Assembly (NCBI GenBank): GCA_965202585.1
Contig: OZ241828.1
Span: 41,168,001 to 41,232,000 of the forward strand
DNA length: 64,000 bases
Direction of reading: 5' to 3'
From: Thalia democratica
Taxonomy: Eukaryota
The translations under genes and the position numbers were made by a program. The notes beneath the pieces were generated by a model. It saw only the letters and a program-made list of their open reading frames with translations, was not told the origin of the DNA and ran no database searches. Positions 18,636-61,100 of this stretch are shown here, in pieces; the first letter of the stretch is position 1; each line of letters opens with the position of its first letter.

Positions 18636-18665
18636 CCATCTCGCACCCCTGGTTAGAAAACCCTG
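18636..18665. mobile_element. Terminal fragment of a Buster-type hAT MITE
   Basis: ctcgcacccctggttagaaaaccctg is followed by atcTAggt, matching the nnnTAnnn target pattern of Buster elements. A copy lies at +19,544. Confidence 0.5.
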
Positions 18666-19106: not shown

Positions 19107-19660
19107 GGTGTACGACTATTCAAATTCTGACAATTTAAATTCCGACAACTCAAATTCGGATAACTCAAACTCGACAATTCAAATTCCAACAACTCAAGTT
19201 CGACAATTCAAATTCCGACAAGTCAAAGTCGGATAATTTAAACTACCACAATTGAACTTTTTAAATAAGACGACTAAATTGTACACATATGTTATAATAA
19301 ATTATATAATGCAAATTAAAAATTTTATCATATGTTTCTTTTTTGATTTGAGATATTAAAGTTTTTATAAAATTATTTTTTTAGTTTTCGAAAGATATAT
19401 AAGCTTTGCTAAAAAATAAATAAATTACTAGATGTAAAATTATTTAATAGAAATAAACGACTATAAAGATAATGTTTAAAAGTTTTTGAATAATTTTAAA
19501 CATAAAAATTAAGTAACCTTAAACATTATGTATAATTTTTTTTATAAATGTAAAAATTATCACTATTGTTATTGTTTATTGAAAGATAAAAAAACGGTCA
19601 ACAAGTTTAGACTAAATACCTGGAGTAAAAAGGAACTTTTCGGTTATCGAGTCGTACAAC
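19107..19660. mobile_element. Non-autonomous DNA element with GGTGTACGACT inverted ends and an internal 15-bp minisatellite
   Basis: ggtgtacgact (19107-19117) and agtcgtacaac (19650-19660) match 10/11 as inverted repeats. caattcaaattccga-type 15-mers run from ~19120 to 19255. No TSD found. A copy lies at 38651-39204. Confidence 0.5.
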
Positions 19661-32900: not shown

Positions 32901-35900
32901 AAATGTATCAAAAAATTTTTGTCTTCTGTGTTGTTAAAAGTTATTTTATTAAAAAGTATTGTTATAGATAACAATGTTTTATAACTTTTATTTATTTTAA
33001 GTAAGAAATATATTATAACATGATTTTATTGCTTAAGTCTGTTAGTTATTAGCTAGCTTATTTAATTAGCAGAAAAATTTCATCTAGATTATTGTTATAA
33101 ACAATAAAAAATATCAACTACTAAGATTTCTTCAAGTGCAGGTTCGATTTTCATTATATTTTTATAATTTTTTTTAACAAATTGAAAAAAATAGTAACTA
33201 AAGTGTTATGTCAATCTTTCAATACCATAACAACCACAAAAAGAAGACATGTGGAATAATGAAATAACAATAAAAAATAAAAAAGTATATTAACTTTCAT
33301 TTAGTCTTCCTAAGATTTGCAGTACATTTATAAGTTGAAAAAGGTGTAAGTGGAAGATTAATTTACCTTTGATTTAAAATGCTCCATTATCGAAATAAAT
33401 AATAATGGAGTAAATTTTTGATCGCCTTAAAAACAATAGATTTATCTTACAGTTAAAGCTTGAGTGTAAACTTTTTTATATTGTTTTAATAATACTTTCT
33501 AACGTTTCAATAATTTTTTTAGTCTTATGTATAAAACAAGGGGTAGGAAGATAAACCACGGACAAATTTATTAAAAAAAAATCTTGTGGGCGGCACTGTA
33601 ATACGAAATGTAGTTTAAGAGCCTAAAAATAATCATTTGTAACAAAATTTATATTACTAATTAATAAAATAATCAGCAAAAAGCCACATTTCAGATCGTA
33701 GACTTTAGCTTTGTCGAGCCGTAGCATGTAACAAGCTATAAGAAAACTGTGGTGTATTTTCTTAAATAAAAACAATTATTGAAGTTTTCTTTTGAAGTTT
33801 AACATTTAGAGCTAAATTATTTTTTCTTCACATTATACAAAATAACTGTAAGTAGATTTGTTTAATGTAGATCTGTTTAATGTAGATTTGTTTTTATTTT
33901 TGATTAAAAGGTAATTAAATAAAAAAAACTAAAGATAGGGCAGGTAGAACAATAAGTGATTAGCTCAAAAGTCACTTGTTTAATCTTCAGATAACGTTTA
34001 TCGTTGCAGAGGGGAGAGTGAGTTCTGATGTTTTCTACCTTTAAAAAAATAGATAAAGCTTGTTGTATTTGTTAGTTTCCATATATTGACGGGTGCATTC
34101 TTTTGCAATGTTCGCGCATGTTGGTTTAAATCATGAATATTTGTTAATGACTATAACTAATATTTACAAACATTTATGCTAAACAGTGTGGGAACTTGTT
34201 CTGTAAAATCTCTCCTAGTAACACGTTACTATTGCTTTTTATACATAAAAAACTTTAATAACTTAGTCTAGAATTTACAGCATGTTGCAGACCGAACTGT
34301 TTAAGATAAAAAGTTTATGTGAGACTCATTTTATTAGTTATAAGTCTTTACTTTTAGAAAAAGTAGTTCAACAGTAAACTAAAATTTGGTCGAAAATAAT
34401 ATTACCGGTTTTATGGAATTTTTAAATAATATCATCTCTAGCTACAAACATTTTCATACGAATATTGTATTTTGCTCGATTTTAGTTATTTTTACTCAGT
34501 GTGTATTTTTTATAATCTTAGTTATGTAGCCTTGAAATATAATCTACGTTTTCAATTACAAAAGGAAATAAGTATGCATTATAGCTAAAGTTATTTTGGT
34601 TCTTTAGTAAAAACGTAGTTAGTTCTAAAAGTAGTAAAAACAATATTATATAAACAAGTAATATTATTAGTACAGAGTTTATAAGAGGCCCCTTAAGAAA
34701 AAAAAACAGAAGCTTAAAATGCTATGGTTCCCTGCAACAAGAGTACTTAACAAACTACCTGTATTAAAACCTTGGACCATTTTATCGCTTTTCACCAACT
34801 TAAGAATATTTAGTGTATTTATCAGGCTCTTTTGTCAATTTATAAGTATTTAAGCTTGATAAAAATTTTCCCTTTTTGTCTCATCACTGTTTTTTTAAAC
34901 TTCAAAAACTTAAGCTAGGTTTTGTATGCTGACGTGGATTATTTTGCCTCTAAGAGTGGCAACTCCATATAAATTTATTTAATAGTAAGTATTTATCAAC
35001 CTACTGTAATCTTTTATTTAAGATTCTGTAACAGAAAACATGCACCTATTCAATACGATTGCAAACCATTATAGTAGGTAGATTTAAAACAACTTTATAT
35101 GAAAATTTAATAATATGCTCACTAATGGTTACGTTCTGTATATGTTCAACAGAATCAGGTAGCCATCAGAAACATCGACACCTTAGACGACAACACCCAC
35201 CTTATGTCATCCAATGCTTATTTAACTAAGCATTTATTGAAATTTTGCATGGTTATGGTAAAAACAATATATAGTTATATTTTAAAGGCGCAAAAGTAGT
35301 TATAGACATGAATTATGTTAGCAATTTTATAACAAAGTTAAAAAAGGCTAAGTAAACCTTATTTATAACTGTTCTTAAACATTTTAATATTATGCATAGG
35401 GCTTCCACAAAGCCAGGTAAGTCAAGAAAAAATAAAAGATTGCGAAAAAAAAACCCGGAATTTTGATATAAACATGTTCTTAATAAGTAAGTTTATCATC
35501 TCTTAATACTACATTTTGCTGATTTTATCTTCTAAAAATTTAGCAATTTATTTCAGAGTCTAACTCAGTTTTTGGAGTAAATTAAAAACATCAAGTCATG
35601 GTTATGTATTTTGAATAAGTTTTGTTAAGAATTTAATTTAAGGATGTCCGGAAACTTTTTCAGTTCCATCCGTGGAAATCCTGTATGCAACAAATTTACA
35701 TAAAAATGATGCATAATAAACATGGGTCTACAAACTATGGTATTCAAAAAGCAAAAATTAGGGTTTGCGAAACTTTTATACTAATAATAATTTAATACAG
35801 AGTTAAACCTTAAAAGCTTCATACATAAAATATATCATTATAGATTATAATCATACTAAGTGATAAAATTTACGATACAAAACAATATCAAACATAAATT

Positions 35901-36669
35901 GCGATTTGATTAACTGAAATTATTAAGATGTTGTTCTGTAAAACATTTATTTAAAACAAAAAAAAACAAAACGTGTTTGGTACTGAAAACAGTTTATGAA
36001 AAATAACTTTATAAACGAATAGAATTTTTTTTTAATTTCTAAAAATAACAAAAATAAATTAAGATTATTTATAAGCTAACAAAGTCACATTTAGGAAAAA
36101 TCTATATATTGTAGTTTTTGTTTAGCTAAAAAACGACGGATGTTCTAACAGTTTGTCGAAAAAATATTAAATTAAAGTTTTGTTTTACTTATTCGCAAAC
36201 AGTTAAAAGCTAAATTAAAAAAAAAATCAACAGTATATATCGAGTTAACCGACCAAGTTTTGTGAAAATTTCACGATGGTTAATGTTTCGAGTAACCTTT
36301 TGATTTTACTTAATAACGTTTTTGTTTCTTGATTTCGTAATCCAGAATTTCATTTGTTATGACATTAAAAGGTATCCGTGGTGTGCGATTCGATAACCGA
36401 AAGGTTCTTTGTGCACCGGGTGTTAGGAGCAAATATTTTGAATGTGCTTTTGTTGTCGTTCAATAACCTATAATAAAGTATTAAAGTTTATTTAAACATA
36501 TTAAAAACCACTAATTTTGACTTTGAAATTCACCACAAAAGTTTTTTCCACTGAAGCTAAGATAGAACTGATGAAATATTAAATTGCTTACAGCTGTTTA
36601 AACAGTTAAATTAACTAACGCAAACAAAATACTAATCCTATATCTTTAATGAAAAAAATTTTAATGACA

Positions 36670-37044
36670 CATCGTTGGGCAAACATTCATAAGGTATCTA
36701 ACAAAAAATTAACTTTGTGTTTATGCAATATTATTTTGAAAACAATAAGAGTTTATTATTAAAATCCACTTTAAAATTAATGACTCTTTTGTTCCTGTTT
36801 ATTGCACAAGACTTTTTCAAAACGTGGCACTTTGCTGCTGATAGCAATTCGCATGTCCGCCTGTGCATTCCAGCGATTTCTAGATTTTGTTTTGATTGAC
36901 AAAATACTACTAAATCCAGATTCGCACAAGTAAGTCGTCGCGAATGGGATGAGCATACTTTGTGCTTTTTCACAAAGCCTTGGAACATAACCATTGTACA
37001 GGACCAACATTGTTCCAGAGTTTTTCTTTCAAACTGCGTTAAAG
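36670..37044 (-). mobile_element. hAT transposase remnant (duplicated copy)
   Basis: Copy of 17126-17500; ORF 36777..37010. Confidence 0.85.
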
Positions 37045-37734
37045 AAAATTAAAAACTTGACATAATTAAGGATTAGGTACTAAGTAAAATATTGTATTCC
37101 AAAAAGTATAAAAAAGTTAATTACTGAGACATTTATTTTGTATAACATTTATTTAACAAAAAAATGCTTTGGTCTATGACCTTGTCAACTTGTCATTTAA
37201 GATCTGAAAAAATAATGAGAAGTGAGGAAAAGGCACAAAAAGAGTAAATAAAAATTAGGCTTAAACTTAAAACAAAAACATTTTATACATTTAAAAATTT
37301 TATTATAACAATTGAGTTAGGTACTAAAATATATAGAACAAACTGTGCTAGGTAAAGCTATTTTCAATTAAAAACTATAAATAATAAATAGTGAGCTTTA
37401 CCACACGACCAACAGCATCTGAGACAACATTTGTCCTTTTTAGGACTCATTAGGCTGGCATAGTCGCGAGAAACCGCTATTGAGATCTTACCAAGCTGGC
37501 TTAAGTAAAATATACTGAAGCGACCGTTTTTGGGTAAAGTTGAAAAATTTGACGCAGCTAAATCATTCACAGCCCAACTTCTCAGACATTGTCTGCTTAT
37601 TATGAAATTATAGTCTGTGCTCGTTTGATCAGTTTAAACTAATATTTATTTAGGCCATCACTAACAAAGTCGAGATGTTTGCGCGATCAATAATAAATAA
37701 TGAACTCTACAACACGACCAACAGCATCCGAGAC

Positions 37735-37779
37735 AACCTACGACCGGTTTCGGCCTTATTAGGACTCATTAGGCAGACA
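37735..37779 (-). ncRNA. Minimal hammerhead motif (duplicated copy; truncated partner at ~37425-37460)
   Basis: Copy of 18191-18235 at +19,544. Confidence 0.7.
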
Positions 37780-40649
37780 TAGTCGCGAGAAACCGTGATT
37801 ACCTGAGAAACAATTAAAAACTATTAACTAACGACAGTAAAATACTTATTAAAAAACTAAAAGATATAATAAAGAAAGTTTTTAAAAGATATAATAAGTA
37901 TAACAAGCTTTAGATTTAGGTGATGGTAGTAATAGTTGTAAACCAACAGTTAAAATCAAAATAACAACTAAATTAGTATTGAGTTTGATTGCTTCGTTAA
38001 AACTATGAAACTTGATAATGAGTAATAATCAAAACTTTAATTTTCTTAATGATTTTAATTACTTGGTAGCTTTAAAAATCGATAGTTATGCTTTGCTTGG
38101 TAAAAGAAATCTAGTCTTACAGTCGCCCAAGTTAAAGAAACAAATTTAATCTCTTTATTTATCAAACAAAAATGAAAAGCCATCTCGCACCCCTGGTTAG
38201 AAAACCCTGATCTAGGTCATCCGAGTCTAAGATTTCAAGGGTCAGCGTATTCGATTAGCGGGATTGAACAAGTTCTCCAAGTAAACATCTTCAAAAGTAC
38301 TTTATAGTTTATAAAAGTAGTTTGAAACAACCTAGTTTAAGGTATACTTTAACGAAAACTTTTAAGTATATTTTTAACGGGATTAAAAATTAAATAAAAA
38401 TGGTTTAATTGCAATTCATCTTTTAAACGATGATTTTACTTTTTTCTAAAGTTTACTAGCATTTAAACAGGCGGCCGAACCCTGCGTTAAATCGAGACTC
38501 GAGTTTTGTTTTAATTAAAACTTGTCTTCTGGTTGCAAAAGAGGGAGCTCGCAGTCGAGGATCAACAAAAAGTGTCTCCGTTCAAAAGTGACAATAAAAA
38601 GTGTCATAAAGCTATAGTTTGCAATTAAGATCGATAGTACCGATATTTGGGGTGTACGACTATTCAAATTCTGACAATTTAAATTCCGACAACTCAAATT
38701 CGGATAACTCAAACTCGACAATTCAAATTCCAACAACTCAAGTTCGACAATTCAAATTCCGACAAGTCAAAGTCGGATAATTTAAACTACCACAATTGAA
38801 CTTTTTAAATAAGACGACTAAATTGTACACATATGTTATAATAAATTATATAATGCAAATTAAAAATTTTATCATATGTTTCTTTTTTGATTTGAGATAT
38901 TAAAGTTTTTATAAAATTATTTTTTTAGTTTTCGAAAGATATATAAGCTTTGCTAAAAAATAAATAAATTACTAGATGTAAAATTATTTAATAGAAATAA
39001 ACGACTATAAAGATAATGTTTAAAAGTTTTTGAATAATTTTAAACATAAAAATTAAGTAACCTTAAACATTATGTATAATTTTTTTTATAAATGTAAAAA
39101 TTATCACTATTGTTATTGTTTATTGAAAGATAAAAAAACGGTCAACAAGTTTAGACTAAATACCTGGAGTAAAAAGGAACTTTTCGGTTATCGAGTCGTA
39201 CAACACATGCTTATAAGTTTCTTAGGGGCTATTAAACTAATTTTTATCATTTAAATATCTAAATCTTCAGTAATAAAACAATAAATTAAACGAAACGAAA
39301 TAAAAGCAATGTAAACAAAAATTAATTGAATTTTGTGATTAAAATGTACTTAAATACTTGTTCAGTTACATAAGAACTATCAAATTTATATAACTTTAAA
39401 TTAATTTAAAAAATAAGACCAACAATACTTATAGGAAACATGTGAATACTTGAATGATAGATTACAACCTCTATAAAAAAAGTCAAAATGTGTAACGCTG
39501 AATAATTTTAACGTTTACTTTTATCTGTAACTTTTTTTTAAAGTTTAATTTTTATTTTATTTAATAATTTTACCTGAAAAGTAAAAACAACTTTACATTT
39601 GAAAAGATAAATAAACAATTGTATATATTTATAACAATTTTAAAGAAATTAATTCTACCATAACTGAATTTAACTTTTATAAACGAAAATATAAAGATAA
39701 ATATTGTAAAATTTTAGCTTTTAATAAACAAATATTCGTTGGATAATAAATATTTCACCCTTGACCGAATTAAAACTAATTTTATAAAAACAAAAACTCG
39801 ATTACTAAAAATTTACTCGAAAGTAATATTTTAAGCTAAAACATACGACTTTTTATTAAGTTTTCGGAATCATCTATTTGTGGCATCCTTGTGCTGAACA
39901 ATATATTAACAATTTTTTAGAAAGTCATCTTATTTCATTATCTTCTCTCAAGTTTTTTTTAAAAGTAACGAACTCGTTTGAATTTGGCTTTTTTAGTTGA
40001 CTTACTGTTTGTTAGTCTTTGTTTTTTTTTTGGTTTTTTGGGTTTGTTTTCGTCGCTTCGGCTGTTAAGCCGAAGTGTTTCATGTCGAACTATTTTGTTA
40101 GTACAATTCGTTGTAGTTTATTGCGAATTTATTCTTTGTAAAGTCTAAACTTATTGACTCGATTTCTTTACACAAGTAGTTTAAGCTTTCAAACAAACTT
40201 AAAAACCTACTTTAATAAATTATAGTTTAAGTAATCTAACTGCTTTGAAAAACTATTTCAATAAACAGCATTTTAGGTTCCATCAAAAATTATAATCTGT
40301 TAGATTAAAAGTATTATTCCAATTTTTTTCATATACCTACTTAATTATTTAACGCGATTAATCTAAAAAGTAGGATAGAACTACCTAAGGAAATAATTTT
40401 TATACGGCATTATAGTTAGTAACCGCCAGGACGGCGTATATATAACCAATCATATCTCTTAAATTGGTATAATATGAGTGATGGTATTACCTCTGATCTT
40501 GAACTAAACAAAATATTACGATAAAAATGGTGTTTTTATTACTATATATAAATAAAAATTAAATTTTTAAATTAAATTTTTCAAAGTTAAACTCTTACAG
40601 TTTTTTTTATTGTAAAATTATGATACAAAGTTTATTAAAAATTTTGTAA

Positions 40650-41059: not shown

Positions 41060-41645
41060 TGTCTGAGTTTTAGTTGTCGGCATTTGAATTGTTAAAATTA
41101 AAATTGTCGGGTTTGAAATATCGGAGTTTAAGTTGCTGAAATTTAAATTGTTCGAATTTCAATTGTCCGAATTTGAATTATCGAAACATAAATTGCCACA
41201 ATTTGAGTTTCAAAATTGGAAATGTTAAAGTTTGGATGGTCAGAATTCAAATTGTCGGAATTTAAGTTGTCCGAATTTGAATTGTCAAAGTTTGAATCGA
41301 ACAAATTTGAGTTGTCGAAGTTTGAATTGTCTAAGTTTGAGTTTTCGGAATTTGAATTGTCGGAATTTGAATTGTTCGAGTTTGAAATTTCCGAATTTGA
41401 ATTGTCCGAATTTGAGTAGTCGGAATTTGAATTGTCCGAATTTGAGTAGTCGGAATTTGAATTGTCCGAATTTGAGTTGCCGGAATTTGAGTTGTCGGAA
41501 TTTGAGATGTCCGAATTTGAATTGTCGGAATTTTAGTTGTCGGAATTTGAATTGTCCGAATTTGAATTGTCGGAATTTAAATTGTCGTATTTGAAATGTC
41601 GGAATTTGAATTGTCGGAATTTGAATTGTCAGAATTTGAATAGTC
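41060..41645. repeat. 15-bp minisatellite array (aatttgaattgtcgg), same family as 19107-19260 in opposite orientation
   Basis: Roughly 35-40 imperfect units. The array ends in aattgtcagaatttgaatagtc, the reverse complement of 19113-19134. Confidence 0.9.
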
Positions 41646-42123
41646 ATGTAACACGATAATTTTCTAGTTGCCATTCGATTTAAGTAAAACGTCTATATGC
41701 TTATACGTCAATGACCAACGATCAAGATGATGTTATAAAGATTTTCTTGCAAATTTACTTGTTGTAGTAGATTTAAAAGAAAAATTATTGTGATGTATTT
41801 TCAAACTGGTTAGCTTATACAGTTTTTTAAACCAAAAATAAAGTTCTCATTACAAATTGTTAAAAAACTGTTTAAAACATAAACAATAAAAGTGTTTTTT
41901 GTTATTTATTGCAGTACTTTTGAAACTTTGCTTAATGATTAGTTTTCATATAAACCCATTAGTTCTAACTTTTCGTATAAATAATACTTTCAGAAAGTTT
42001 TGAAACTATAAAAACATCTTAAACAATCATTTTAGTAGTAATATAATTTTTAGATTTAAAAGTTTACATTAAATTTCCAGATAGTAGTAGGTTGAGATAG
42101 TTTACATTTAAAAAAGTTAAAAA

Positions 42124-42160: not shown

Positions 42161-45100
42161 TCAAAACAAATAGCGATTTAGAATTGTTTCATATTTTTCT
42201 TGTTGTCCGGAGCTTGAATTCGGATTACCTTCAGCAGTAATAAACTTTTCGCAGTCTTCTAAGGTGGCTACACCATTCTGAACATCAGCTCCAAACCCAG
42301 ATTTGTATGATTCGTATCTAGCCTGTTATATGTTATTTTTACATCTCCTATACAAAGCTAGTTATCTACACTAAAACACTTGCTGTCGATAATTTTTCTT
42401 AACTATAGGTGCTTTAAGTTTTATATACGTATAAATAAAATCCAAGGTTAGAAATAAGTCTGAAATAAATATTTATTTTAATAATTTAAAAGTTTAAACT
42501 TATTTATCATCAAAAAATTTTGAAAACAAAGTTGAAAAGTAACATTTAAAAAAGAAGTTAACTATACATAACTATCATATTTTAAACAATTTATATTTAA
42601 GAATAATAACAATACTGTTTTTGTTTTAGGGTAAATAACAGAACAAATTGATAAATTTGTACTTTAAAATTCAATTTTTTAAGCAGTTTCTAAACTTACT
42701 TTAGGTAATACTTTTTGATATGTGTTTATAAACCTCAAGGACTTTCAATTGCGAAAAATATTTAAACACAATAGTAACGGTGTTTAAAAATACATCTACC
42801 TAGACTACTTGTTTTAACAGCCACTTGTTTTTCTTTTAAACTAAAGTATGACTTTCAATAAATAATAACAATTTATAAACTTACTGCTTTCATTCTATCA
42901 AGTACACCTTCTGACTTTATTTTACTTGCAACACGTAGTGCCTTGGCAAAGCAATCCATAGCTCCAATATGCGATATAAGCATGTCATCGACGCACGTGG
43001 ATTCTCTTCTCACTTTACAATCAAAGTTTAATCCGCCTGGTGCTAAACCTCCTTGTTCCAGAACAGTCTGAATTAGGTAAAAACTTGATTTTTTTTTAAG
43101 GTTGAAGTCTTTATAGATTAATATTTGTTAAAAAATACATGTGAATTCTTAATACTGAAAAGTTTTTTATTAATCTATTAAAAAACTTTTTTTTTTACCG
43201 TACATTAATTTAACTGCTCAACTTTTAGCTTTTGTTTAAAAACAACTATTAATTTTAAATTTTAAACAACTTTTACTTATTTATTAAAAAAGTAGCTTAA
43301 CATTATAAAATAAAGTTTTATATTTACATTTTTTTTAATAGTCAAAAACAATCTTCAAGCTATTTTAGTATACCACAATGTTCAATTAATTTTTTTGGTA
43401 TAAACATAAAGTTAAAAGTAATATAGTTGCTTTATAAACTATTAGTTTTTTAAGTTGAGAAAACAAAAGAGTAGTTTGTCGAATAAATCGTTAAGATTTT
43501 CAAAACTAAAATTTTATTGTTGTTTTTATAACGCTAAGTTTAATATAAACAAATAAAGCTACAAACTTACGAGATTTTTATAAGTAAAAATGTTTTACCG
43601 AAATGGTAGCTAATATGCCAAGATATGGTTTTAATGAGTTATTAAGTTATATAACTTAAAAAAACAATGCTGAACTCAGTTATTTTTATAACTTTATTAT
43701 TTAACCTTGTTTTGAGGTTCAAAACACATAAATTGTCCAAAATAATAATTACACAAAACATTCTACCAAACACAATTAACTGAGTAGTTGAGGTTACAAA
43801 AATAGTGAAAAAATAAACACTAAAACTTAAAAAGTTAATATCTACTTATCAAAGAATTATACTTTCTGAGTTTTGTAAGAAATTTTTAAATTATAATAAT
43901 AATTTCCATAACCTTTTTTTTTTGTGCAATACATACAGACACTAAAAAAAGTTATACACTAGATCGGGGGTCGGCAAACTGTGGCCTGTGGGCTATATAT
44001 GACTGGCAAAATAAAAATTTGTGTCCCACAAGGTACTTTTTAGTAAAAATTGTCTTACTTTATAACATCTTAAAAATAACTTAAATGGTTAAGCTTACGA
44101 TTAGGCTAAAAACTCAAATAGTATTTTTTATTACTCTTTTTTTTCTTATTAGATAACATTTTTTGTTTGAAGTGTTATTTTTATATTGATTAGTACACAT
44201 ATATTAAAATAAGTAAGCCCTGCGGACATTTTCTTTACAATGCGGCCTGCGAACAACTGTTTGTAGAAAAATTGGCCCGCGACTTATAAAAGCCTACTGA
44301 CCCCTGAAATAGAAAAATATTTATTTAATACTTCTAAACTATTAATGTATACACGCATAAATTTTCAAAATAATAAGTTTTTAATAAAAACTAGTAAAAA
44401 CTTTAAGATTAAGTTCTATATGATAAGTTAGGACGAAGTTAAAGTCTTAAATAAAAAAAAGTATCTTTTAATAATATCTGATTATTAAAAAGTTAACCAT
44501 TACTAGCTATGCTTGTTTTCGAAATTTTGAGCAAGGTTTATGCAGTAACTTTTTCAAAAGTTAAAAAAGATACTCTTAACAAAAGGTAAGACCAGACAAG
44601 TAAAAAAGCATGAAAGATGTTGAAAGTCTTGATATATAGGTCTATTTTGATTTCGTTTACAAAAAAGTATCTAAACTTTGTGAGTGATTAACTATCAAAA
44701 AAACCCTTTCAACTTACTCTAGTTTGGGTGTAATAACTTTTTATATGCTTGTTGTAAAAAAGCAATAGAAAAAGATATAAAACTATGGTAAGTTTTTAAA
44801 AGTATACGAAATAAATTTATAAAAAAATCATTAGTATAATTTGTGTATCTTAGCGGTTTTAATTACGGTATTAAAAACTGTAGTATTTGAGTTTTTTAAG
44901 ATCGAAAACTACCAGTTGATATGAATATGAAAAAAGTTTAACTTTAACATCATTAAACATTGAAATTTGTTTTTTTTACGTAACAATCTTTTTTTATAAA
45001 CACTTTTTTTTTAATTTTAGAAAGCGTAATTCTATCTACTTAAAGAAACAAAAATTGTAAGTAGTTTCAGCTAATTTAGCAAACCCAGTGACAAGCTCTT

Positions 45101-48100
45101 GTAATTAGTTATATGAATTACCCGGTATTTTTCATACTGCTAGTTGTTTGTTTTAGTTTTATAATGAGTATAAAAATCTGTTAAATTTAAAAATCGTTTT
45201 TCTAGATAAAACAACAATTTGAACATGTTTAACACCGTTGAATACGTACAAAATTAACAACTAACCATCATTATCATTGTTGCGTCTTTTAAGTCCATTG
45301 GAAACTGATCAGTGTCCCATCCGAGATCAGGAGATCCTGTGTTTGAATCGATCGAACCGAGCATTCCGTAAGCTGAGGATATTGCAATATCGTGCTCATG
45401 ACAGTGACCTGCCAGTGTTGTGTGGTTTGGCTCGATGTTAAGCTGTTGAGGTGTTTTTTTTTTAATTTTTCTCAAATATAAATTTACACTTAGTTTAAGA
45501 AAGTGTATATATCAAAAAAACTCCGTTTACTTATAAAAAATGAACTGTAAAAATGTTAAGTAACCTGTTTAGTTAACAATTTTTTTAAATAGAATCTTAT
45601 GCATGAATACGTTTTAATTTATTTACATAAAGAAGCTTAGTTAAAATTTTCAGTGCAACTTACTGTTTTATTATACTTGACAAGGTGGGATTTTTTTCCA
45701 ATTAAAACCGGGTAGGAAATGAAATAAATAATTTGCACATTTATTAATATATAAAAATAAAATATAAATTTTTTTTTTGGAAAGCCGGTTTATGTAGAGC
45801 TATATAAAAGTAGTTTTTTAGATAAATTACCATACAACTTTGTTATACGCTGATTAAAATTTTTTTTAATTAAAATGTTTATTTTTAAAAACGATTCTTT
45901 TAAATAACCGAATTAATTAGTGCTAATTATTGCCTTTACGATCGTTGTTTTAGCATAAATAAGTTGCACTGTAATATTGTTTTTGATATCTAGATTCTAT
46001 TTAGTGTTTGATTGCCGTTATACCACCAACTCTTAGTCTTTTTTTTATGGTAGTTAGGTAACTAATGTAAAACTTAAATAAAAATGTAAAACTCCTGTAA
46101 AAACAAAATTCGAATAAAAATTATTAAAAATAAGCGTTTTACTTAAAGTTCTAAAGTGTGTGCCGTTTTTTTATTTAAACCTTTAAACTTATTATTTATT
46201 GTATAAAAGATACCTATCAATTTAAAAATCTTTAAATTTCTTACACATTATTACTCTTACCTTAAAGTCTTTGTCAAGTCCATACGTTTTTAGAAATGCA
46301 ATGACTGTCTGTGCATCTGAACAAAATATTCATTTAAAAAACTATTCAAATTTCTTTAAACTAATTCGTATCATTTGTTGTAAGAAGTTACTTAAAAATC
46401 ATAATCACCATATTTACAAAACTTGATAAGTATTGTAAGCATTGCTTATTTGAAAAATATCAGAAAAATATTTTTAAAAACCTAAAAAAAATTTAAGTTA
46501 AGGTATAAAAAATTTAAAAAAAGTATACCTTTGTATGATACTTAATCAACAGTATAGCACAAACACTAGAAAAACTTTTAAATTTTTATAAATAAATTAG
46601 TCTACTTATAACTACCAACTGTAACAGTTTAACTAACTATCGATTAAAAAACAAACTGTGCTCTATGTTTACTTTTAGTGCCTATTTTTATTTATACTAA
46701 TTAATATTTGTTTCTAGTTGTATATGGTTTAACCAAAATTTGCAATTTTATCGATAGTTATTACATGTTTTTGATAGTTAACTTATTTATACTGGCTTCA
46801 TGCCATAAAATAATTTATTAAAACAAAAAAAAATATTAAAAAAAATTTTACAATGTTAAGGTAAAAGCTCGTTAAACAAAAACAAATTACCATAATCATA
46901 CTGGTGTTTTGTCGGCTCTTTAGGCTTTGGCTCTATAAGAAGTTGACCTGCAAATCCGATCTTCTTTTTGTAAGCTGTTAAAAACAAAATGGTAGGTGTA
47001 AGTAGTTATAGTTTTATTCGTGGTTGCATTTGAATCTACTTTTTATTGAAAAAAACTATTAGTATCTTAAAGCCTGGCTAGAAAAACAACGCTAGATGCA
47101 CACACGTCTAAAATGTTGTCTATAAAAGCAGTCATGAAATTAATTTACCGGATTTTAAGGACTTTTACTCAAGAAATAGCTTGAGAAATTGGTCTTGAGA
47201 ATAAATACGGGTTTAAGTTCACCTGAGCAAACTTAAATTTTGTAGGAGTCATCGGTCTACAAACAAACCTGAAACACACTGATTTGTAATGGTGTTTATT
47301 TTTTTTTTGATAACTCTATTGCTGCTGAAAGTGGTTTTAATGGTAAGATGATAAAAACTTTTTTTCATACAAACTAAGTGAGATCGGAATGTATGGCTTA
47401 CTAATAAATTAAAGTTTCTAGTTCTCATCAATTTTGGCACAACGAAAAACAAAAGGTACAAGTTATAAGCAAATGCTTGATAAAGTGTACAGCTTTGTAT
47501 TTCATTTTACAGCACCAATTTAATAAAGCTAGTACATAATAAGAGAATAGTAAATATAGCTTCTTAAAAACAGAACCGGTCAGCTAACTTGATCTTCTGG
47601 CCCGCGACGTGGTTTTTAGGTCAAAAACTAATTTTGCAAAACTATACAAAATAATTATAATTTTCTTTTGATAAACTGTAGTAGTATTAACTGATTGGTC
47701 ATTACAACTTTGCGTTTTTAGTTTGTTTTTTTTTAATTTTTTTAGTATAGTTTTGGAAGTTACACTGCCCTTAAAATATTTCTTCTGCTAAATCTTGCCC
47801 GCCAACAAAAAAAAAAGCTGCCTACCCCTAGCTTAGAAAATATACGCAATCAATGCGAGGAACAATTTTAAAGTTGCTTGTAACGCAATTAATTTCGAAA
47901 TAACACTTCAAAACCATATTCAAAAAAAATATGTTAAAGATCATTCGAAGATCAAAGAGGCTGTGAAAATCTAAAACTGTATAAATTTAGACATGTGCTT
48001 CTAAATTATTTTCGGTTTTAAAAAACTAAGCGTAACGTATACTTTACTTCTGTTTTACCAAACAATCTCTTTTTAAATAATCCTTTTTTAAGATATTCTT

Positions 48101-51100
48101 ACTTAAGTACATATTTTGTAAAATATTTTGTAAAAATTTGCTATACTTTCATTAAGATCTTAGATCATATATTTAAAAAATTCTAAACAAGTTTGAGATG
48201 TAAATAAAAATGTGAAAGAAGCTATACAAATAAAATGCGTATTGTTAAATGTTGAAGAAAAGTGTATGGAATTTTGTAAAATAATAAAATAATGAACGTA
48301 AGTTTTTTTTAAAATTTTACTCACCTACTACCATTTTGAAAAAGTTAGCCATGTTGTCGAGCTCACATTTTAGATTGGTGTTTAGTAACGAGTAGTAGCC
48401 CTCTCGTCCCCCCCAAAACACGAAATTTTCTGCACCTAACTTTAATGCTACATCAAGGCCTTTTTTAACTTGAGCTCCTGCATAAGCTAAAATGTGTGCA
48501 TCCGGGTTAGTTGAGGCTCCGTTCGCGTATCTATAAACATTTATTCCTATTCAAATAACTTACGTTTGCACGAACACATTTTTGAACGAAGGTGCTTTTA
48601 CACGAGGGGTCACTTTTGCACGAAGGATCTTTTTTTCACGATAGTAAAAAGAAGAAAAAATAAGTTACCGTCCGAGGGTAAGGGTTAGGGGTAACAGTGA
48701 TAACAGAAATAATTAAATTAAAATTTTAAATTGATAAAAGATAGAAATTTTTTATTTTTAAATCAAAAAGAAAAAAATCAACTTGTGGAAAAGTGTTTTT
48801 GTGCAAAAGTGTCTTTGTACAAAAGTGACCCTTCGTACAAAGGTATCCCTTCGTGAATATTTGACTCCTACCCATATACATAAATAGACTACTATCTATG
48901 TTAAAATTTTATCTAATAACATTTAATGCAGGTATAGCTACAAAAACTTATAGTATACAACCGTCATATTAAATTTAAATTAAGAATATTCTACGCTAAA
49001 AGTAAAAAGATCTGTATTTATATATAAAACGACTGATTTTTAATAAGATATAAGCAATAAGATTTGTTCTTTAAGTAAAATGTTAGGTTGAAACTAAGTA
49101 AAAGTTTTAAGTAATGAAATTAATTTTAAAAATTCTGTACGAAAACTTGGTTAATTATAATTTTCAAACATAAAAAAACTTAAATTCATATGTGTTATTA
49201 TAAAAAAAAGTTTCAAAAGGAATTATAATAAAAAAGAAATAAATGATCATATTAATTATACTTTTATTATTAAGGTTGTTTTATATTTATATTCTTATAA
49301 AAAATATCGAGTGTAGAATTCGTGTTATAAAATTTTTAAACTTCAATGCATTTAGACAAATACATATTCAGTGAAAATTAACTTTTAGACAGTTATTTGT
49401 TAACGTTTAATTGCCTTTACCTTGGATGAGCAAACAAGTTACATGTGTTCCACAAAAGCTTTATATCATGTCTTTTCTGAAGTTCAGCTGCAAGGTCGAC
49501 CAGTTTGTCAAAGTGCTCATTAGTCTCAGATAGCGAGCTTCCTTCGGGTGCAATATCTCGGTCGTGAAATGTATAGTACTGTGAAATACGTTTAAGTTAT
49601 ACTTTGCAAAAACAAAATAGTTTTTCTAGTTTAAGAGATACTTTACGTGTTTTTTAATATTTTACTTTTTAATCTAGTTTATTATTTTTTTCTTTTTGTT
49701 TAAGTTAAGAAAGTTGTGTATAATGTATGATATCAAAATATAATTTTATATATGAATATAAAACTTTATATGAATAAAATTCTAATAAACTGACGAAAAA
49801 TTTTAAACTAAAAGAAACTTTAATTCATGATTAAGCTTAATTTTACTAAATTATATCATGTATAAATTCATTATTAAGAATTCTTAACATACTTTTTACT
49901 AAAACTACTTAATACTTTTAAGTAAATTATGGTAATAATGTTTATTTATCTTTTGAATGTAGTGAAAATAAAGCAAATTTATGTTGCTTAAATAGTTCAA
50001 TAATCAAAATTTTATATAAAATTAAAGAGAAAAAAAGCTTTTACAATATTTGAAATTATGTTGCAGTAAGTTTAGTTTTTTAATGTTTAATGTAAATATA
50101 TGGTAGTAAGACTTATCTAACAACCTTTATCATTTTTGTTTTTCAAATGCTTGTAAAAAGTGTTTAAATAACCAATTTTGCGTAGTGTTATTAAACTCAT
50201 AGTAGAAAGTCGATAAAAACTTTAAGATGTACCTATTTATTACTTATATGATAAAAATTTGTGACACATAAGCGTTAAGAATAAAAAGTTTCTCTAGAAT
50301 CTTGATTTCCTAAATTACTTCGATAGATGAAAATAAATATAAACTTTAAAAATATTTTAAAATGACCAGGTTAGTAGAGCAAACATAAAACTGTTGAACA
50401 AATTGTAACAAAAAAATATTGATTATAGTACATATTAAAAAAAGATTAAAAAAATTTTTAGACAATTAACATTAGATCTTGTTTAGATTTTTATTAGACT
50501 CGTATATAGTCTTCAAATTTAATTATTCATGCTAATATTTTGCATTTTTGTATAAAATTAAGTTAATTAATATGTATTATATAATCTTTGTTGTGGTTAT
50601 AAGCTGCATCGAACTTTAAAAAAAAGCCTAGTTATATTTGCAAACCAAACATTAAATGTTAAAGCTTTTAAGATTGCTAAGTTCAACTCTGAAAACAGGG
50701 TTTGGTAATTTATAAATATAGATGTTTTTCACGACCAAATTTTATACTACAAGTAATTTTACTAAACTCTAATTATCAAAGTTACGCATAAATAAACTAG
50801 TAAAGAAATCATTATTAAAACAAAAAAAAAGTTATACTTTTAGCAGAATCGCATAAATACAAATAGCTCTAAGTAGAAAAAAAATCACCTTAACTCCAAG
50901 TTTTGACATAAAATCGAATGCTACTCTCATTCTACGTTGTGCATTTTCAATAGAGTTTGATTGATCATCCCAAGGTCGATTAAGAGTTGGAAAGCCAAAC
51001 GGATCAGCACCTAAAATTTTATTTTAAGTTTTATTTATTTTTAAGAAAATATAAATGGGGTTTAAATTTAATTTCTATAGATAAATGTAAGTTTAAGTAG

Positions 51101-53265
51101 CCTAAACAAACTTTCAAAGTTATGAAGTTAAAAAACGAGATTAAGTTATTTAATAAATAAACTGTTTTTAAGTTTGTGTAAAATTAGAATTTAAAATATA
51201 ATTATTATACTTTCTAAGCATAAATACATACTCAGGTAATAAGGCAGCCCAAGTGTGGTGTTGTTTATATAACAAAAAATACAAAACTATTAAATAAAGA
51301 AAATAAACAAATTCGACATTAAAAAATATTGTAGCCATTAATGATATAATCTTATTATTACTGTCGTGAACTAAAAAAAAGCTCTGTTTAGAAGTTATTA
51401 CAAATCGAAAATTAACAGTTTTTTACTAATCAAAGCTAAAAAAAACTCTCAATAATCAAATACCTGTGCCTCTAAACGTATGCCAGTAACACACTGAAAA
51501 TCTTAACCACTCATGCATTGGTTTGCCCATGATGACTTCATCAGCGTTGTAGTGACGAAAACATAAAACATCGTCTACAGCAGCATCTGGTCTGTATTCT
51601 ACTTTTTTAATGCCTAGAATGATATAATAAATTTAAAAAAGTATTATTTAAAATAAAAAAGGGTAAAGTTAAAAAAGTTTAGATTCAAAAAGGATGTAAC
51701 GTAACCGTACACAACGATTAATGTTACTAAAGCTTTATAGAACTAATAAATAAAGCTTTTATTATTTCATTACACTTGTATATTTCTAGATGTAATAACA
51801 GTCAAGGGTTTTTCGTGCAATATATAAGAGCTAAAATACAGGTACAGACAAAAAACTTTAATGCTGTAAATTAGAAATGGCAGTTACCTAAGCTTTGCTG
51901 ATTAAGTATCTAAGAAGGACTTTTGGTTGACCGAAGAATATAAGAATTCTAGATAAAACGTTTTTCTTATTTTTTTGTTTTTTTTTGTTTTTTATTGGGT
52001 ATGTTTAGATAATATTTTAACTAGTAACCTACTACGAATACTAGTCATTTATAAAAAATTTGAGCACTAAAGTTTATGTTAAAATAAATGAAATCACATT
52101 ATATTAAAAATTTGTGATTTTGTTACAATTTTTGATTTAGAAAAAAAAATCAAAATAAGTTGTTAATTTTTTGAAAAATAAGTTTAATAAATTCTTATTA
52201 ATTAATTTTTAGTTCTTAAAACATGGTTGTTGTTTACAAACTGTTATAGACGTTTTAAAAAAAATAAATGCTGTTTATTTTACTTGTTTAGATTTAATTG
52301 TTAAAACAACTTAACAAGTTTTTTTTTTATAAATCAGCACCATATGTATTTTTTTGTATTAGTTACCACAGTTCTGGATTTTGAAAGTTTTCTTTATCTT
52401 TTGAAGAATGAAACAATTACATATTTAATATTTTACAAATACAGCAAAAAACGTTGTATGTATTTTTCGGTTTCTTCTACTATTTTGCTGAATTTAAACA
52501 GTAAATATTAAGATATTTAAACATTAATATAACGCTAACTAATAACAATTTTTACAAGAAAAAGTATAACGTCAACGTTATACAAATATCTCCGTTTTAG
52601 TTTTAGTGGCAATACAGGTCATATATTTAGTATTATAGTTGCAATACTTTCCTATAACTTATTATAGATTGGAGTAAAGTTAACAAATATAATTAAGATG
52701 CTTTTTTTCTTTTTGATTTTATTTATGCAATAACTTTTTGTACCTAAAACAACAATTAAACTTTGTAATTACAAAATAGTTTATAAATTTCTATATCTTT
52801 AAATCATCTTACATTGTTCAGATATATCTAATATGTTTAGTAACTTCAAAGAACTTTTGATAAAAAAAACACTTTTCAAATTAAAACTACATCAAGCTGA
52901 AATTTATTCAAAAATTTAAAAAAAGTATTATAAACAAAACCTGATTTTTGTAAGTTTAAAAAAGTCTTACTTGATGGAAATAAATCTGATTTTAGTACAG
53001 ACGAGGGGTTTGCACCTGAACCAGGGGCGAATGATGACATATTAAAACTTTTTACCAACCTGTAAAAACTTGTAAAACTAAACAAAAAATAAAACTATTT
53101 GTTTTTGTAAAATTACATATACAGATAATTTAAGTTTGAAAATATATAGAAGTTTTATATAACAACTCATAAAAATTTAATCAATTTTATTTTTCTGTAA
53201 CTTAAATAACAAACTTCAGAATAGTCTTTTTATTTACCAACATCACAAACTTACTGATATTTCAT
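42161..53265 (-). CDS. xylA: Xylose isomerase (class II, XylA family), complete multi-exon gene, 455 aa from ATG 53040 or 465 aa from ATG 53265
   Basis: Manually spliced with GT-AG boundaries and consistent phases. Exons (minus): 53255-53265 (putative, MKYQ), 52971-53059, 51464-51613, 50889-51010, 49421-49578, 48325-48530, 46891-46974, 46261-46316, 45266-45442, 42885-43067, 42161-42322 (TGA at 42161-42163). Translation shows XylA hallmark motifs: [102 protein letters not shown]. No stops or frameshifts. Confidence 0.96.
43965..44306. mobile_element. Buster-type hAT MITE in an xylA intron
   Basis: Ends are cgggggtcggcaaac and ctactgacccctg, with internal ggcccgcg motifs. The flanks cacTAgat / aaaTAgaa look like a decayed 8-bp TSD. 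Confidence 0.7.
47180..47470 (+). mobile_element. Decayed non-LTR retrotransposon RT fragment in an xylA intron
   Basis: Plus-strand remnants [22 protein letters not shown] and, with a frameshift, RKQKVQV resemble LINE RT motifs QYGFR / LYKL..GI.G.LL.WI.SFL..RKQ.V. Confidence 0.5.
47570..47830. mobile_element. Degenerate Buster-type hAT MITE in an xylA intron
   Basis: Internal tggcccgcgac and right end gctgcctacccta-like. Flanks tcttaaaa / gcttagaa match at 6/8. Confidence 0.45.
48560..48870. mobile_element. MITE with long degenerate inverted ends built from ttttgcacga-type repeats
   Basis: gaggggtcacttttgcacgaagg (~48605-48627) is mirrored by ctttgtacaaaagtgacccttcgt (~48814-48837). A central gggtaagggttagggg motif is present. 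It lies in the xylA intron between 48530 and 49421. Confidence 0.6.
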
Positions 53266-56400: not shown

Positions 56401-58116
56401 TTAAATAAATTTCAACAGTTTAACATTGTTTGTTACTTTTAGTTTTGAAAAATAGAAACTTAAATTATTTGTAAAATGTTTAGATTGCTTTTTTTCCAAA
56501 GAAAAAGTTATAGCAATATTTTTTAATAAATTTAATGTAAAATATTTCGTTCATAACTGTTCTTTACACAAGATTAGCTAAACACTAGTTAATTACTATT
56601 GAAGTTTTCTACGTTTGTTTTAATGTTTAAAATAAAAACAGAAAAAAATATTAGTGTTTGAAATTAAACGGAAAGAAATATAGACATATTAATATTCTCT
56701 AATAATTAGTTATTTTAGTTAAGAAGTTACGTTTTAATGTACTAAAGTTTATAGTTAACATAAAGGTATTTATTGTTCGATGTGTTTACGTCCTATAAAC
56801 TTAAATCAATTAATACCTAAAAACTTTTTAAACACGATATATCTAACTTTTAAACAGTAATTGTGCAAAACTATGATACTTACAATAAACGTTTTGAGTT
56901 AAAATATTTATTCCGATATAATATAAATTTATAACAAACTGTTTAAATTAAAAAAACTAATCTAGAAAGCACTAAAAGACTAAACGTAGTAAAAATAAAA
57001 AGTTCTTATTGTTAAAAGTCACTGAAAAAAAATTATGGTTTGTTTAGATTAGACAACCCTTTTTATACAAAATTATAAACATTAAGTACGCTTGTTACAA
57101 TGAAGTAGCAATTTTTTTTTTGTTTAGGTTTGTTTAAAAAGCTAGTACCTATTGACTGCACTACTTTCTGAAAGCTATAATCACACGTATTTAAAATCTT
57201 TAATTTATATGAGATAAATTTATGTAAATAAGTTTTAAACAAAAAAATTACATCGAACACATTTAAAACAGCTAAAATTTAAAAAACATTTATTGAGAAA
57301 CATACCTTTTAAAAAAAGTTTAAGTTTTTCATGAAATATTCAGGAAGAAAGATTCATTTAAAACTTAGCATCTAAGAAATATTTTTATTTACTTTTTTGG
57401 TAAAAATTTTAAAAAGTCAAACAGTCAACTGATTTAAAAAATAAAACGATACACTTTTTTACGATTTCATACTTAACTTAAAAAAATTAAGTTTTTAATC
57501 AACTTACTTATAGTTATTATTTGAACAAACCAAAATAAAGTAAAGTTTATGTTGTTATCTAGCTATTTTTCGTATAAGTTGCAAAAGTTTAGAGAGTAAA
57601 AATGTCTATTTATCGATAATACTGTTTGTATATTTTATCCATCTAGTATGCATTTATTAATAGTTGTTGTCACGATTTTATAAATTATGTTTATTAGTAT
57701 ACTTAATTAAACTTTTAAAATAAAGTCTACAGTATAATATTTACATTCAAATAATGAAGCAAAATTATTATTTTCTTTCATAAAATTTTAAAATATTTTG
57801 TTAAAGTTTAATTATTTAGCAACCAATATTATAAAAATTTAGCAACAAAGATTTGTATTAATGAAGAAAAAACTACGTATATATTCAATACTAAAAAATT
57901 AAAGATGCAAATATTAAAGTCCAATATTTTAATGGTAGATATAAAAATACTTCTTTTAATGATAAAGACCAAAAACAAATAAGAATTACTTAAGAAAAAA
58001 TTACAAATATCTAAAATAGTATAATAATATAAAAACTAATGTTAAAAAATATTATACAATCTAAACTTCGAAAATCAAACCTCTTATAGATTTCATGTAT
58101 TAAAAAGACACTTAAC

Positions 58117-61100
58117 ATGTCTTTTTTTACTTATTTATTTCTAATATATCAAATCATCGTGGTAAGCTCAATCGATTGTCCTAAAACGATTGAATGGACG
58201 AAATACCACAACTCGTGTTTAAAATTAATTGTTGAAGCAGGTAAGTTAAACAAAACTAGTTTAAGTCGGATAACAAAACAAACCAACTAATACTTTTCTA
58301 AACGCAGCTTCGTGGAAACAAGCATCTACTGAGTGTCTTTTAAGTAGCGGAAGACTCATGAACATAACTAGAAATGATGAAGAGTTTTATAAGCTGTTAC
58401 GACTGTCCAACGGGGGTGATAACAAGCAGGCTCAAGGAGATATATGGATCGGAGCACACGTGCCGCCGCTTGGTAAATGATTTGAGTGTAATTTATATCT
58501 AAAAATTGTTTGGCTGAAACCATTAAAAGCTTTGACTTTTATGCTTATTTTCAACGTTTGCCATCTGAACAAAGGTGTATCTTTTAAAATGACTTCTAAG
58601 AGTATACAATCTCAAATAGACTGTCGGGGTTTACACAAAAATAGTATACTTTGGTTTTAAATTGTTCAAAAAACCATAAGTATTTTCAGAAAGCTTTAGA
58701 AAATAAATATACTTTTTAACTTATTAAATTTTTATTTTTAACAGTTCATGACTCTTACTTTGATCAATGTACTGATGGGCTTATTTTTAAAAGAACAAAG
58801 TGCTTTAGAGTTCAAAAAGATACATACCACTGGAAACAAGCCGTTCAAAGTTGTTATGATAAGGGAGGAAGAATAGCTACAGTTAACAATGATGAGTTCT
58901 TAAAGTTCGTCAACAAACTTGCAAAAGATGTTTCTAAGACAAAGTAATCATTGTATTTAGTTTAAAAATAGAGTTTTTTCATGGTGATAATTGAAAATTA
59001 TATTTTAAAATATAAAGCACGCAAGATGAATTCTGGGTCAATGGACAAGTTAAATTCTCTGAAATAGTAGATGAAAATAAAGAGAGACTATTCTTTCCTA
59101 CAACCAATAAAAGTTTTATCAAAAACTCTTGTATTGCGGTTAGAAAACTTTTTTTTTAATAATTTTTATGAGTTTTCTAAAAGTTTTTCTATATATGTTT
59201 CTAAACTTCTTAAAATAATCACCTAAGTGTGTAAAATTCAGGTTATAGGTAAAAAAGATGCAAAAAATATGTACAACTTAAAACACTGTTCCGAAAAGAA
59301 AAGTTCAATTTGTGAATTTAGTTTACAACCTCAAAAACTACAAAAAAGTTCTAAAGAAGTTCCTCCGTCGTAAGTAAAAAAATATTTAACTTTTTAATTT
59401 TGTATGATCTTTTAAAAATCTAAAAATTATTTTAGCTACGTCGGAAGTTGCAATGAGATAGCGGTGCTTTCCTCTTTAGCTTCAGAAATTATAACGAACA
59501 GTAATCAAGAACAACCTTTACATAGTTTATTTGCTAAGCTAAAAAACGGCCATTATATTATGCTTCCGAAGTCATCCTCATTACAATTAAATACGAAACG
59601 AATTGATGACACAAGTTTTGATGGGAACTATCGATTAGAATACTGTAACTTCGACAGTACAAGAAAGCTGCTATCAAAATCGTCAAGAGAAAGCATTTCA
59701 AATGTCTATCTTAAAATGTACAAGTATGTATTTATCTAACAACCTATAACGGATATTTTTTAATGAAAAGTTTAAACCGTTTTTGATATTTTTAACTATT
59801 GTGATCTTTTTTTTTAATTATTTTCTACTACAAAGGCATTTTATTAACTTTCAAATTTTTTATTGTTTAGACTTCTTATTGTAAGCACTGCTTTTTAAGA
59901 TTCAAATTAGAATTTAAGAAAAAAAATCTAAACAAATTGAACAGATGGTCAAACTACAAATCTAATGAACTTAAACTTGAAGTTTCTTCAGGAAACCTTA
60001 AATCTTACAACCAGTTACAATCTAGCACACAATTTATCGGGGCATGTATTTCTTCTAATTTACAAGGTACTTTTTTATATAAACATTTACATTGAGTTTT
60101 CCGTATAAAAAACTTAAACCTTTTGTTGAAGAAATGCAGTCTAACTATAAACTTATACAGTTAATGTTAATAATGTTCTATTTACAATAAGTGCTTTTAA
60201 AATGGAATAGTTTTGATATATATTAAAAAAAAACAATGCAATAAAAATTTATTTTTTGTTAAAAATAATCTTAAACCTTTATAACCACGTAATTATACTT
60301 TAGGTATATGGAAAACTACTTCTTGCAGTAAAAATTATGCTTTCGTATGCCAATATCATCAACTTGAAGCATGGAAAGATTTCAGAAAAAGCTATCCGAA
60401 TGAACTTGAAGTTTTTTTAACTTTTCAACTTAATTTAAAAATTTTGAAGTGAACATAAAAAGCTACCGTTTACTCTTTAAACTTTTTAATTCTGAGTTAT
60501 ACTTGAAAATTTAAAACATAGTTTTAATAAAATATAACATTTTAAAGATTGGAAATATTTTAGTTGGTTTGAACTGTTTTTCAAACTTTGATAAGAGTTG
60601 AATTTTAGGTTTATAAAGCGTACATTGAGAATGAAATGTACCAATTGCACAATGCAAACGTCTCTGTGTGTAACGAGATAATTAAAAACGTAGAAAAAAC
60701 AATTAAACAACTTTGCATATCGATTAAAAAATCAAAAAATAGTTGGAAGAACTTTGAAAACATGGAAGTTATTAACCTACTTATGATAACAATAGAAATA
60801 ATGGAACGCATTCAAGACAAAATAAGTCAAAGTGTAAGTGACTAATGTAGTCAATTCGATTATGTAACTGATTTATTTATTAGCTAAATGTAAATCAGTT
60901 TTGTATTAAAGAATACAATAATTAGCTATTAGGAATAAAAAATATGTATAAGTAGTTTATTTAAAAGTAAAATTAAGTTAATCACATTCATTAAAAATAA
61001 ATACTCAGTAAAAATGATACATAAGGGTATTTTTATATTTATGATTAAACTTGACATTTTTATTTAAAGATAATGTAATAACATGTTTTGAAAGTTCCTA

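Follow-up and report, generated by a model that had tools for sequence, protein, structure and literature searches.

A 64,000-nt stretch of the genome of Thalia democratica (GCA_965202585.1, contig OZ241828.1, positions 41,168,001 to 41,232,000), hereafter the window and numbered from its first base, carries on its minus strand a complete gene for xylose isomerase (XI; XylA, EC 5.3.1.5), which occupies positions 42161-53040 in 10 coding exons. We consider this locus, with a probability of roughly 0.93, to be the single-copy, native and vertically inherited tunicate orthologue of the metazoan class II enzyme. In the textbook view animals use a reductase/dehydrogenase route for xylose. An earlier note, made from the letters of the window alone, had recognized the gene and proposed that it was either a horizontal acquisition or a patchily retained ancestral gene. 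The second part of this proposal holds at least as far back as the first animals, while recent horizontal gene transfer (HGT) has to be abandoned, as the tree and the intron positions described below indicate.

The gene model was obtained by reading the exon boundaries on the DNA and joining the exons. Stop-free minus-strand stretches between 42.1 and 53.1 kb encode unmistakable XylA peptides, and their junction yields an uninterrupted open reading frame (ORF) of 1368 nt, or 455 amino acids, from an ATG at 53040-53038 to a TGA at 42163-42161. The nine introns are 453 to 2198 nt long and all are of the GT-AG type, so that the claim of an intact and intron-rich gene with all its catalytic and metal-binding motifs is borne out. 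A profile search of the 802-Mb genome (1833 contigs) found XylA at this one locus only. The lower end that the earlier note gave for the gene, 42161, coincides with the final base of the stop, and its upper end, 53265, lies 225 nt upstream of the ATG.

All ten coding exons lie on the minus strand. The first (52971-53040, 70 nt) begins with the ATG, ends in phase 1 and aligns to nt 29-115 of L020, an mRNA of a close relative described below; the position of the intron that follows it is common to Ciona, Clavelina, amphioxus, Exaiptasia and Corticium. Exon 2 (51464-51613, 150 nt) matches positions 4-53 of the NCBIfam profile TIGR02630 (xylose_isom_A) at E 3.5e-16, and exon 3 (50889-51010, 122 nt) matches positions 53-98 at E 1e-9. 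Exon 4 (49421-49578, 158 nt; positions 94-147, E 2.8e-18) encodes the motifs FHDRD (from residue 118 of the 455-aa protein, with His119 and Asp122) and WNTCNLF (from 157), and exon 5 (48325-48530, 206 nt; positions 148-215, E 2.1e-29) encodes FWGGREGY (from 205). Exon 6 (46891-46974, 84 nt; positions 215-244, E 4.3e-13) carries EPKPKEP (from 250, with Glu250 and Lys252). The short exon 7 (46261-46316, 56 nt) was recognized by a tblastn match to P0016 and is 91% identical in nucleotides to L020 nt 832-887. Exon 8 (45266-45442, 177 nt; E 4.9e-23 to TIGR02630) contains NIEPNH (from 284, with Glu286 and His289), DSNTGS (from 314, with Asp314) and GWDTDQF (from 323, with Asp325 and Asp327). Finally, exon 9 (42885-43067, 183 nt; positions 313-380, E 3.2e-20) encodes NFDCK (from 355, with Asp357), and exon 10 (42161-42322) comprises 159 nt plus the TGA stop and matches positions 383-435 at E 7.8e-9.

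The assignment to the family rests on these profile matches. Eight of the ten exon translations, that is all except exons 1 and 7, match TIGR02630 at E 2e-29 to 7.8e-9 each and jointly span positions 4-435 of its 435, with a summed score of ~504 bits that leaves out exon 7 and the split codons. The cut-off of this equivalog profile is 533.25 bits; the full-length test was made on P0270, a proxy that is 94.5% identical to the window protein, together with the exon pieces of the window, and P0270 scores 637.4 bits and the XI of Ciona 647.5 bits, both above the cut-off. The class I profile TIGR02631 is matched only weakly, exon 5 scoring 35.5 bits and P0270 scoring 110 where the cut-off is 447. 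The window protein is thus a class II XI and not one of the class I (Actinobacteria-type) enzymes, and its exon 2 matches the longer N-terminal region. Every motif that the earlier note had quoted is found in the window protein: the catalytic His/Asp and Lys/Glu, the metal ligands and FWGGREGY are all retained. The ten catalytic and metal-binding residues named above align with the same residues in 47 other animal, 10 plant or algal and 4 bacterial-type sequences, three typical bacterial-type XIs being identical in these columns and the divergent bacterial-type P0077 departing at two non-ligand positions. Moreover, solved XIs match the proxy P0270 over almost their full length at E 1e-137 to 2e-146. 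Because these matches to solved tetrameric XIs are of the order of E 1e-140, the window protein would be a homotetrameric TIM-barrel. The PDB copy searched holds no structure or kinetics of any animal XI.

The splicing of the model is supported by the mRNA of a close relative. L020 (from a marine metatranscriptome, JGI record 3300018952, 1762 nt) is an uninterrupted mRNA that encodes P0270, and it aligns with the window in ten colinear blocks whose ends fall within 1-3 nt of the exon ends, with 84-93% identity per block. Over the coding sequence the two are 87.6% identical in nucleotides and differ by 133 synonymous and 25 non-synonymous codons, giving a ratio of non-synonymous to synonymous substitution rates (dN/dS) of 0.038 by the Nei-Gojobori method. 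Because L020 is colinear with the ten exons and dN/dS is this low, the close relative uses the junctions of the window model, and purifying selection on the protein is strong. L020 starts with the tunicate spliced leader (SL) ATTCTATTTGAATAAG, which ends 19 nt before its ATG. In the window, the pyrimidine-rich ...TTTTTACAG lies directly 5' of the 19 nt preceding the ATG, and a CAG is found at the spot equivalent to that of L020. Judged from the letters, TTTTTACAG is a plausible trans-splice acceptor for the window XylA, and by equivalence to L020 the interval 53041-53068 (minus strand) would hold a short 5' untranslated region of ~19 nt and a putative SL acceptor at ~53060/53059. The earlier note had counted 10 to 11 exons; the ten coding exons are confirmed, and an eleventh exon upstream becomes unnecessary because the mRNA of the relative bears its SL 19 nt before the ATG. 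As for the species itself, the RNA runs holding 31-mers of the window are marine metatranscriptomes only, and four of them hold 6-9% of the 31-mers sampled from a 5.9-kb stretch that is 13.6% exon.

The host is a tunicate, as seen both in the similarity of its XI and in its spliced leader, and the data fit a pelagic one. A cnidarian such as Hydra, suggested at first by a GC content of 25% and a genome of ~800 Mb, is rejected on these two grounds. Among annotated tunicate XIs, the window protein is 74.6% identical to that of Ciona intestinalis, 74.7% to that of Clavelina lepadiformis and 72.4% to that of Styela clava, compared with 63-68% for other named animal XIs and ~53% for those of plants. 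The closest sequences of all are metatranscriptome contigs (94.5% and ~80-82%); the exact window protein is absent from the protein collection searched, in which P0270 is the nearest entry. The 16-nt Ciona-type spliced leader followed by GT also occurs 358 times in the genome as an exact match, whereas the reversed control gives 0, and this leader sequence is the one documented for Ciona (PMC1488885). Copies on contig C26 form an array that repeats regularly every ~15,085 bp, others are clustered on contig C4 at ~80.16-80.42 Mb, and some of the 358 may be SL RNA genes.

A protein search with P0270 recovered named XI orthologues from ~15 major animal groups. Outside the bilaterians, they are present in the sponges Corticium and Ephydatia and in the cnidarians Nematostella, Exaiptasia, Orbicella, Porites and Actinostola. 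Protostome orthologues come from molluscs, annelids, a nemertean, a brachiopod, a bryozoan, crustaceans and the nematode Plectus, and deuterostome ones from echinoderms, a hemichordate, amphioxus, three tunicates and ray-finned fishes (Lepisosteus, Sardina, Aplochiton, Knipowitschia and Salminus). Among the sequences found, no XI was seen in tetrapods or insects, although no search was aimed at their absence. In the fish clade, the 440-aa P0388 of Salminus brasiliensis is a full-length XI that bears the public name 'E3 ubiquitin-protein ligase RNF144B isoform X1', by its sequence likely a naming error. Proteins annotated as XI exist in dozens of animal genomes, so that the usual description of animals as lacking XylA turns out to be a textbook simplification.

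In addition to a quick tree, a careful maximum likelihood tree of 61 rows was built under LG+C20+F+G4 with PMSF. It omits P0077 (very long branch), P0096 (frameshifted C-terminus) and P0145 (N-terminally truncated, with a long insertion), as well as most plant proteins and the metatranscriptome hits other than seven rows marked unk; its bootstrap has not converged completely, and its outgroup consists of three long bacterial-type rows. The animal XIs form a clade with support of 100/100 that largely follows animal phylogeny, with sponges basal, Cnidaria at 96/85, Bilateria at 95/86, Echinodermata at 100/98, Vertebrata at 100/100 and molluscs at 91/93. The tunicates, including the window, are united at 100/100; within them Styela is the first to branch, and the subclade of the window is sister to Ciona plus Clavelina. 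Under a sparse sampling, animals and green plants are sisters (98/95) relative to the three bacterial-type representatives.

The intron positions tell the same history. The exon structures of seven orthologues were mapped onto their genomic loci and all introns were placed on one alignment. The nine introns of the window gene all lie at tunicate positions, with small offsets at two of them: at the first, Styela is shifted by one column, and at the eighth, Ciona by one column and one phase. Of the nine, eight match amphioxus, Exaiptasia or the sponge Corticium in both position and phase; the remaining one (phase 0, column 141) is found in tunicates only, with a phase-0 intron of amphioxus two columns away. 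In contrast, none of the 12 introns of the Arabidopsis gene coincides with an intron of the window gene. The XI genes of sponge, anemone and amphioxus have 13-14 introns, and tunicates therefore lost four or five. The earlier note had stated in advance that recent HGT would be refuted if the gene fell inside a broad and congruent clade of metazoan sequences that have introns in common, and this is the pattern found: the gene lies within such a clade and shares introns back to sponges, which overturns the idea of a horizontal acquisition by this lineage.

By homology, the course from gene to product can be proposed as follows. The mRNA would very probably be SL trans-spliced ~19 nt before the ATG and cis-spliced from the ten exons, giving a (beta/alpha)8-barrel protein that would assemble as a tetramer with two divalent metal ions. 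His119 and Asp122 would open the sugar ring, and Lys252 together with the metals would drive the hydride shift, the predicted metal ligands being Glu250, Glu286, His289, Asp314, Asp325, Asp327 and Asp357. The reaction would convert D-xylose to D-xylulose and, more slowly, D-glucose to D-fructose, and its role in a filter feeder may be the use of dietary (algal) pentoses. The protein is most likely cytosolic, because inspection by eye shows neither a hydrophobic signal-like N-terminus nor an SKL-type C-terminus. The XI of Ciona carries the same active-site signatures as the window protein, and it is listed among the XIs functionally expressed in Saccharomyces cerevisiae (PMC5591498).

The earlier note had further suggested that NIEPNH, DSNTGS, NFDCK and WNTCNL were local substitutions that might alter substrate or metal preference. 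They are not local, being common to all animals or to large animal groups. NIEPNH is present in 48 of 48 animal sequences including the window, with a Pro at the site of Ala or Asn in bacteria and of Cys in plants, and NTGSPD is equally invariant (48 of 48). W-x-T-C/S-N-L-F is animal-wide with the sole exception of the sponge Corticium (WGTANLF), x being Asn in tunicates, the hemichordate, echinoderms, Plectus and a bryozoan, and Ala in the majority of protostomes and cnidarians. These three signatures are all absent from the plant and bacterial-type sequences compared. NFDCK is found in sponges, cnidarians, molluscs, amphioxus, tunicates and Plectus, while echinoderms, fishes and crustaceans have NFDAK. 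Such residues may matter for animal XIs as a class, and nothing in them is special to the window gene.

Several points weigh against the reading of the locus as a working, vertically inherited XI. The junctions are supported by the mRNA of a relative, and the support for expression in the species itself is indirect, coming from 31-mers. The TIGR02630 cut-off was passed by the proxy, with the exon pieces alongside, and not by the spliced window protein entire. The divalent-metal isomerase activity is predicted by homology, and the literature searched hardly touches on what animal XIs do physiologically, yielding on their biology only a yeast-engineering mention of the Ciona enzyme and a plant-centred XI phylogeny of 2026. 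Finally, no XYLB-type xylulokinase was detected in the genome with the profiles TIGR01312, PF02782 and PF00370, in a search made exon by exon that can miss genes with short exons; if this absence is real, a simple route from xylose to the pentose phosphates comes into question, and the usual pairing of XylA with XylB would be broken in the T. democratica genome.

Of the competing explanations, the one that survives best accepts vertical descent within animals and concerns a deeper event, namely that the stem animal did not inherit its copy from the last eukaryotic common ancestor but acquired it in a very old transfer, with bacteria or a plant-like eukaryote as the donor. The complete mismatch with the Arabidopsis introns and the patchy distribution of XylA among eukaryotes fit such a transfer, but the sister relationship of animals and green plants, seen under sparse sampling, fits a single eukaryotic origin equally well. 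Bacteria, fungi and protists were sampled too thinly for the deep origin of the animal clade, and we regard an ancient transfer as a possible but somewhat doubtful scenario.

It is clearly less probable that the gene, although a XylA orthologue, belongs to an animal clade whose function has shifted to another aldose-ketose substrate, to another metal preference or to the interconversion of glucose and fructose. The animal-wide residues beside the active site, unlike those of plants and bacteria, and the fact that no XYLB-type xylulokinase was detected speak for such a shift, but all ten catalytic and metal-binding residues are unchanged, the Ciona enzyme shares these signatures and has been listed as one that works for xylose use in yeast (PMC5591498), and an exon-by-exon search for kinases is weak for genes with short exons. 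A related and slightly more speculative thought is that a clade extending from sponges to teleosts, under strong purifying selection and with invariant residues of its own, may serve a role beyond classical xylose catabolism; candidate roles may include the interconversion of glucose and fructose or of another aldose-ketose pair, tied to feeding on algal polysaccharides.

It is very improbable that the gene has fallen silent or is decaying, as a pseudogene without expression that keeps an intact appearance: the 455-codon ORF is intact and its nine pairs of splice sites are canonical, dN/dS against the expressed mRNA of the close relative is 0.038, and the 31-mers in metatranscriptomes occur in about the proportion expected for exons. 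Least credible of all is a recent or lineage-specific transfer of a bacterial, fungal or plant xylA followed by intron gain, for which XylA being best known from bacteria and the reductase/dehydrogenase route that textbooks give to animals might have spoken, but which is contradicted by the nesting of the window gene within tunicates and of tunicates within a metazoan clade of 100/100 support whose branching is largely that of animal phylogeny, by eight of nine intron positions common to amphioxus, anemone or sponge, by orthologues in named species of ~15 major animal groups (whose shared introns exclude a contaminant origin), and by the setting of the gene on a 101-Mb contig, with spliceosomal introns of 23% GC, exons of 41% GC and genome windows of 21-31% GC. 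A vertically inherited tunicate XI therefore remains the preferred interpretation.

The profile searches for xylulokinase returned three loci of the FGGY family only. An intronless ORF of 547 amino acids on the plus strand of C10 (17446388-17448031; L010:1489-3132) encodes an FGGY-family carbohydrate kinase with its best PDB match in the Yersinia FGGY/ribulokinase-like protein 3GG4 (E 9e-148); in an otherwise intron-rich genome, such a frame may represent a retrogene, a conserved gene of one exon or an acquisition. On the minus strand of C8 (50277013-50278158; L009:1465-2610), a glycerol-kinase-like open frame of 381 amino acids is without the first ~140 residues of the family; it may be a truncated retrocopy, or the gene may have a further exon upstream. 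The third locus is a multi-exon glycerol kinase gene on C1 (54222767-54228999). Weak kinase-profile hits on C4 near the window were considered as xylulokinase and rejected, as they correspond to HSP70 genes: two near-identical HSP70-type exons lie ~100 kb apart at 41071751-41071966 and 40970962-40971177 (L021 and L022), 96-197 kb before the window, and look like a duplicated gene pair.

In the surroundings of the gene, nothing suggests an operon-like or functional link to XylA, and no counterpart of the neighbours of the Ciona XI gene (an SNF transporter, a TPR protein and glutathione synthetase) was recognized within the 64 kb of the window. Just downstream of the XylA stop, at ~41100-41700, lies a low-complexity tandem repeat of short period that reads ...SEFELSEFEL... 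or ...NLNCRNLNC... in several frames. About 5 kb beyond the 5' end of the gene and on the opposite strand, Cys- and Trp-rich exons at 58090-60450 (+) probably belong to a lectin-like gene, as one of them has a sub-threshold match to the C-type lectin domain PF00059 (E 5e-4, 21.2 bits versus a cut-off of 22.6). In the first 40 kb of the window, ~1200-20750 and ~20750-40300 are two tandem copies of one sequence, which repeats at a period of 19,544 bp and is 100% identical in every 1-kb bin. The pair reflects either a segmental duplication of very recent date or an artefact of the assembly. Within it lie transposon-like ORFs and a hammerhead repeat (17821-18280), which therefore has a second copy ~19.5 kb further on.

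These results show that horizontal transfer cannot be concluded from an intron-rich XylA in an animal genome, and that animals are not uniformly without the isomerase route, XylA being an old and widely retained animal gene. Strongly conserved though they are, animal XIs have hardly been studied in their biochemistry and physiology. The family to which the window gene belongs as an ordinary orthologue has already been annotated in animals at large, and its Ciona member has already been put to use; the window gene adds one tunicate sequence to it. Eukaryote-type XIs are still candidates for the engineering of xylose use in yeast, where that of Ciona has already been tried.

Compared with known systems, the window gene is closest to those of Ciona (P0292, 'xylose isomerase isoform X1') and of Clavelina and Styela (both named 'xylose isomerase-like'), which also have 10 coding exons, fall in the same 100/100 clade and share its active-site motifs, except for one Ile/Val difference beside DSNTGS. 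Its introns are longer, at 453-2198 nt, whereas those of Ciona measure 80-555 nt. The plant and algal XIs of Arabidopsis (P0187) and Bryopsis (P0162) are ~53% identical to the window protein and have the same catalytic residues, but their N-terminus is ~20-30 residues longer and their motifs read NIECNH, NTGDAQ and WGTAQLF. Finally, the solved class II XIs used for comparison are those of Thermotoga neapolitana (1A0E), Geobacillus (1A0D), Thermoanaerobacterium (1A0C), Bacteroides (4XKM) and Piromyces sp. E2 (5NH4). For the last of these we take the catalytic and metal-binding residues to be His102, Asp105, Glu233, Lys235, Glu269, His272, Asp297, Asp308, Asp310 and Asp340, each of which corresponds to a residue of the window protein at a constant offset of +17. 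From this set of enzymes the window protein differs by an N-terminus ~17 residues longer and by the animal signature substitutions near the active site.

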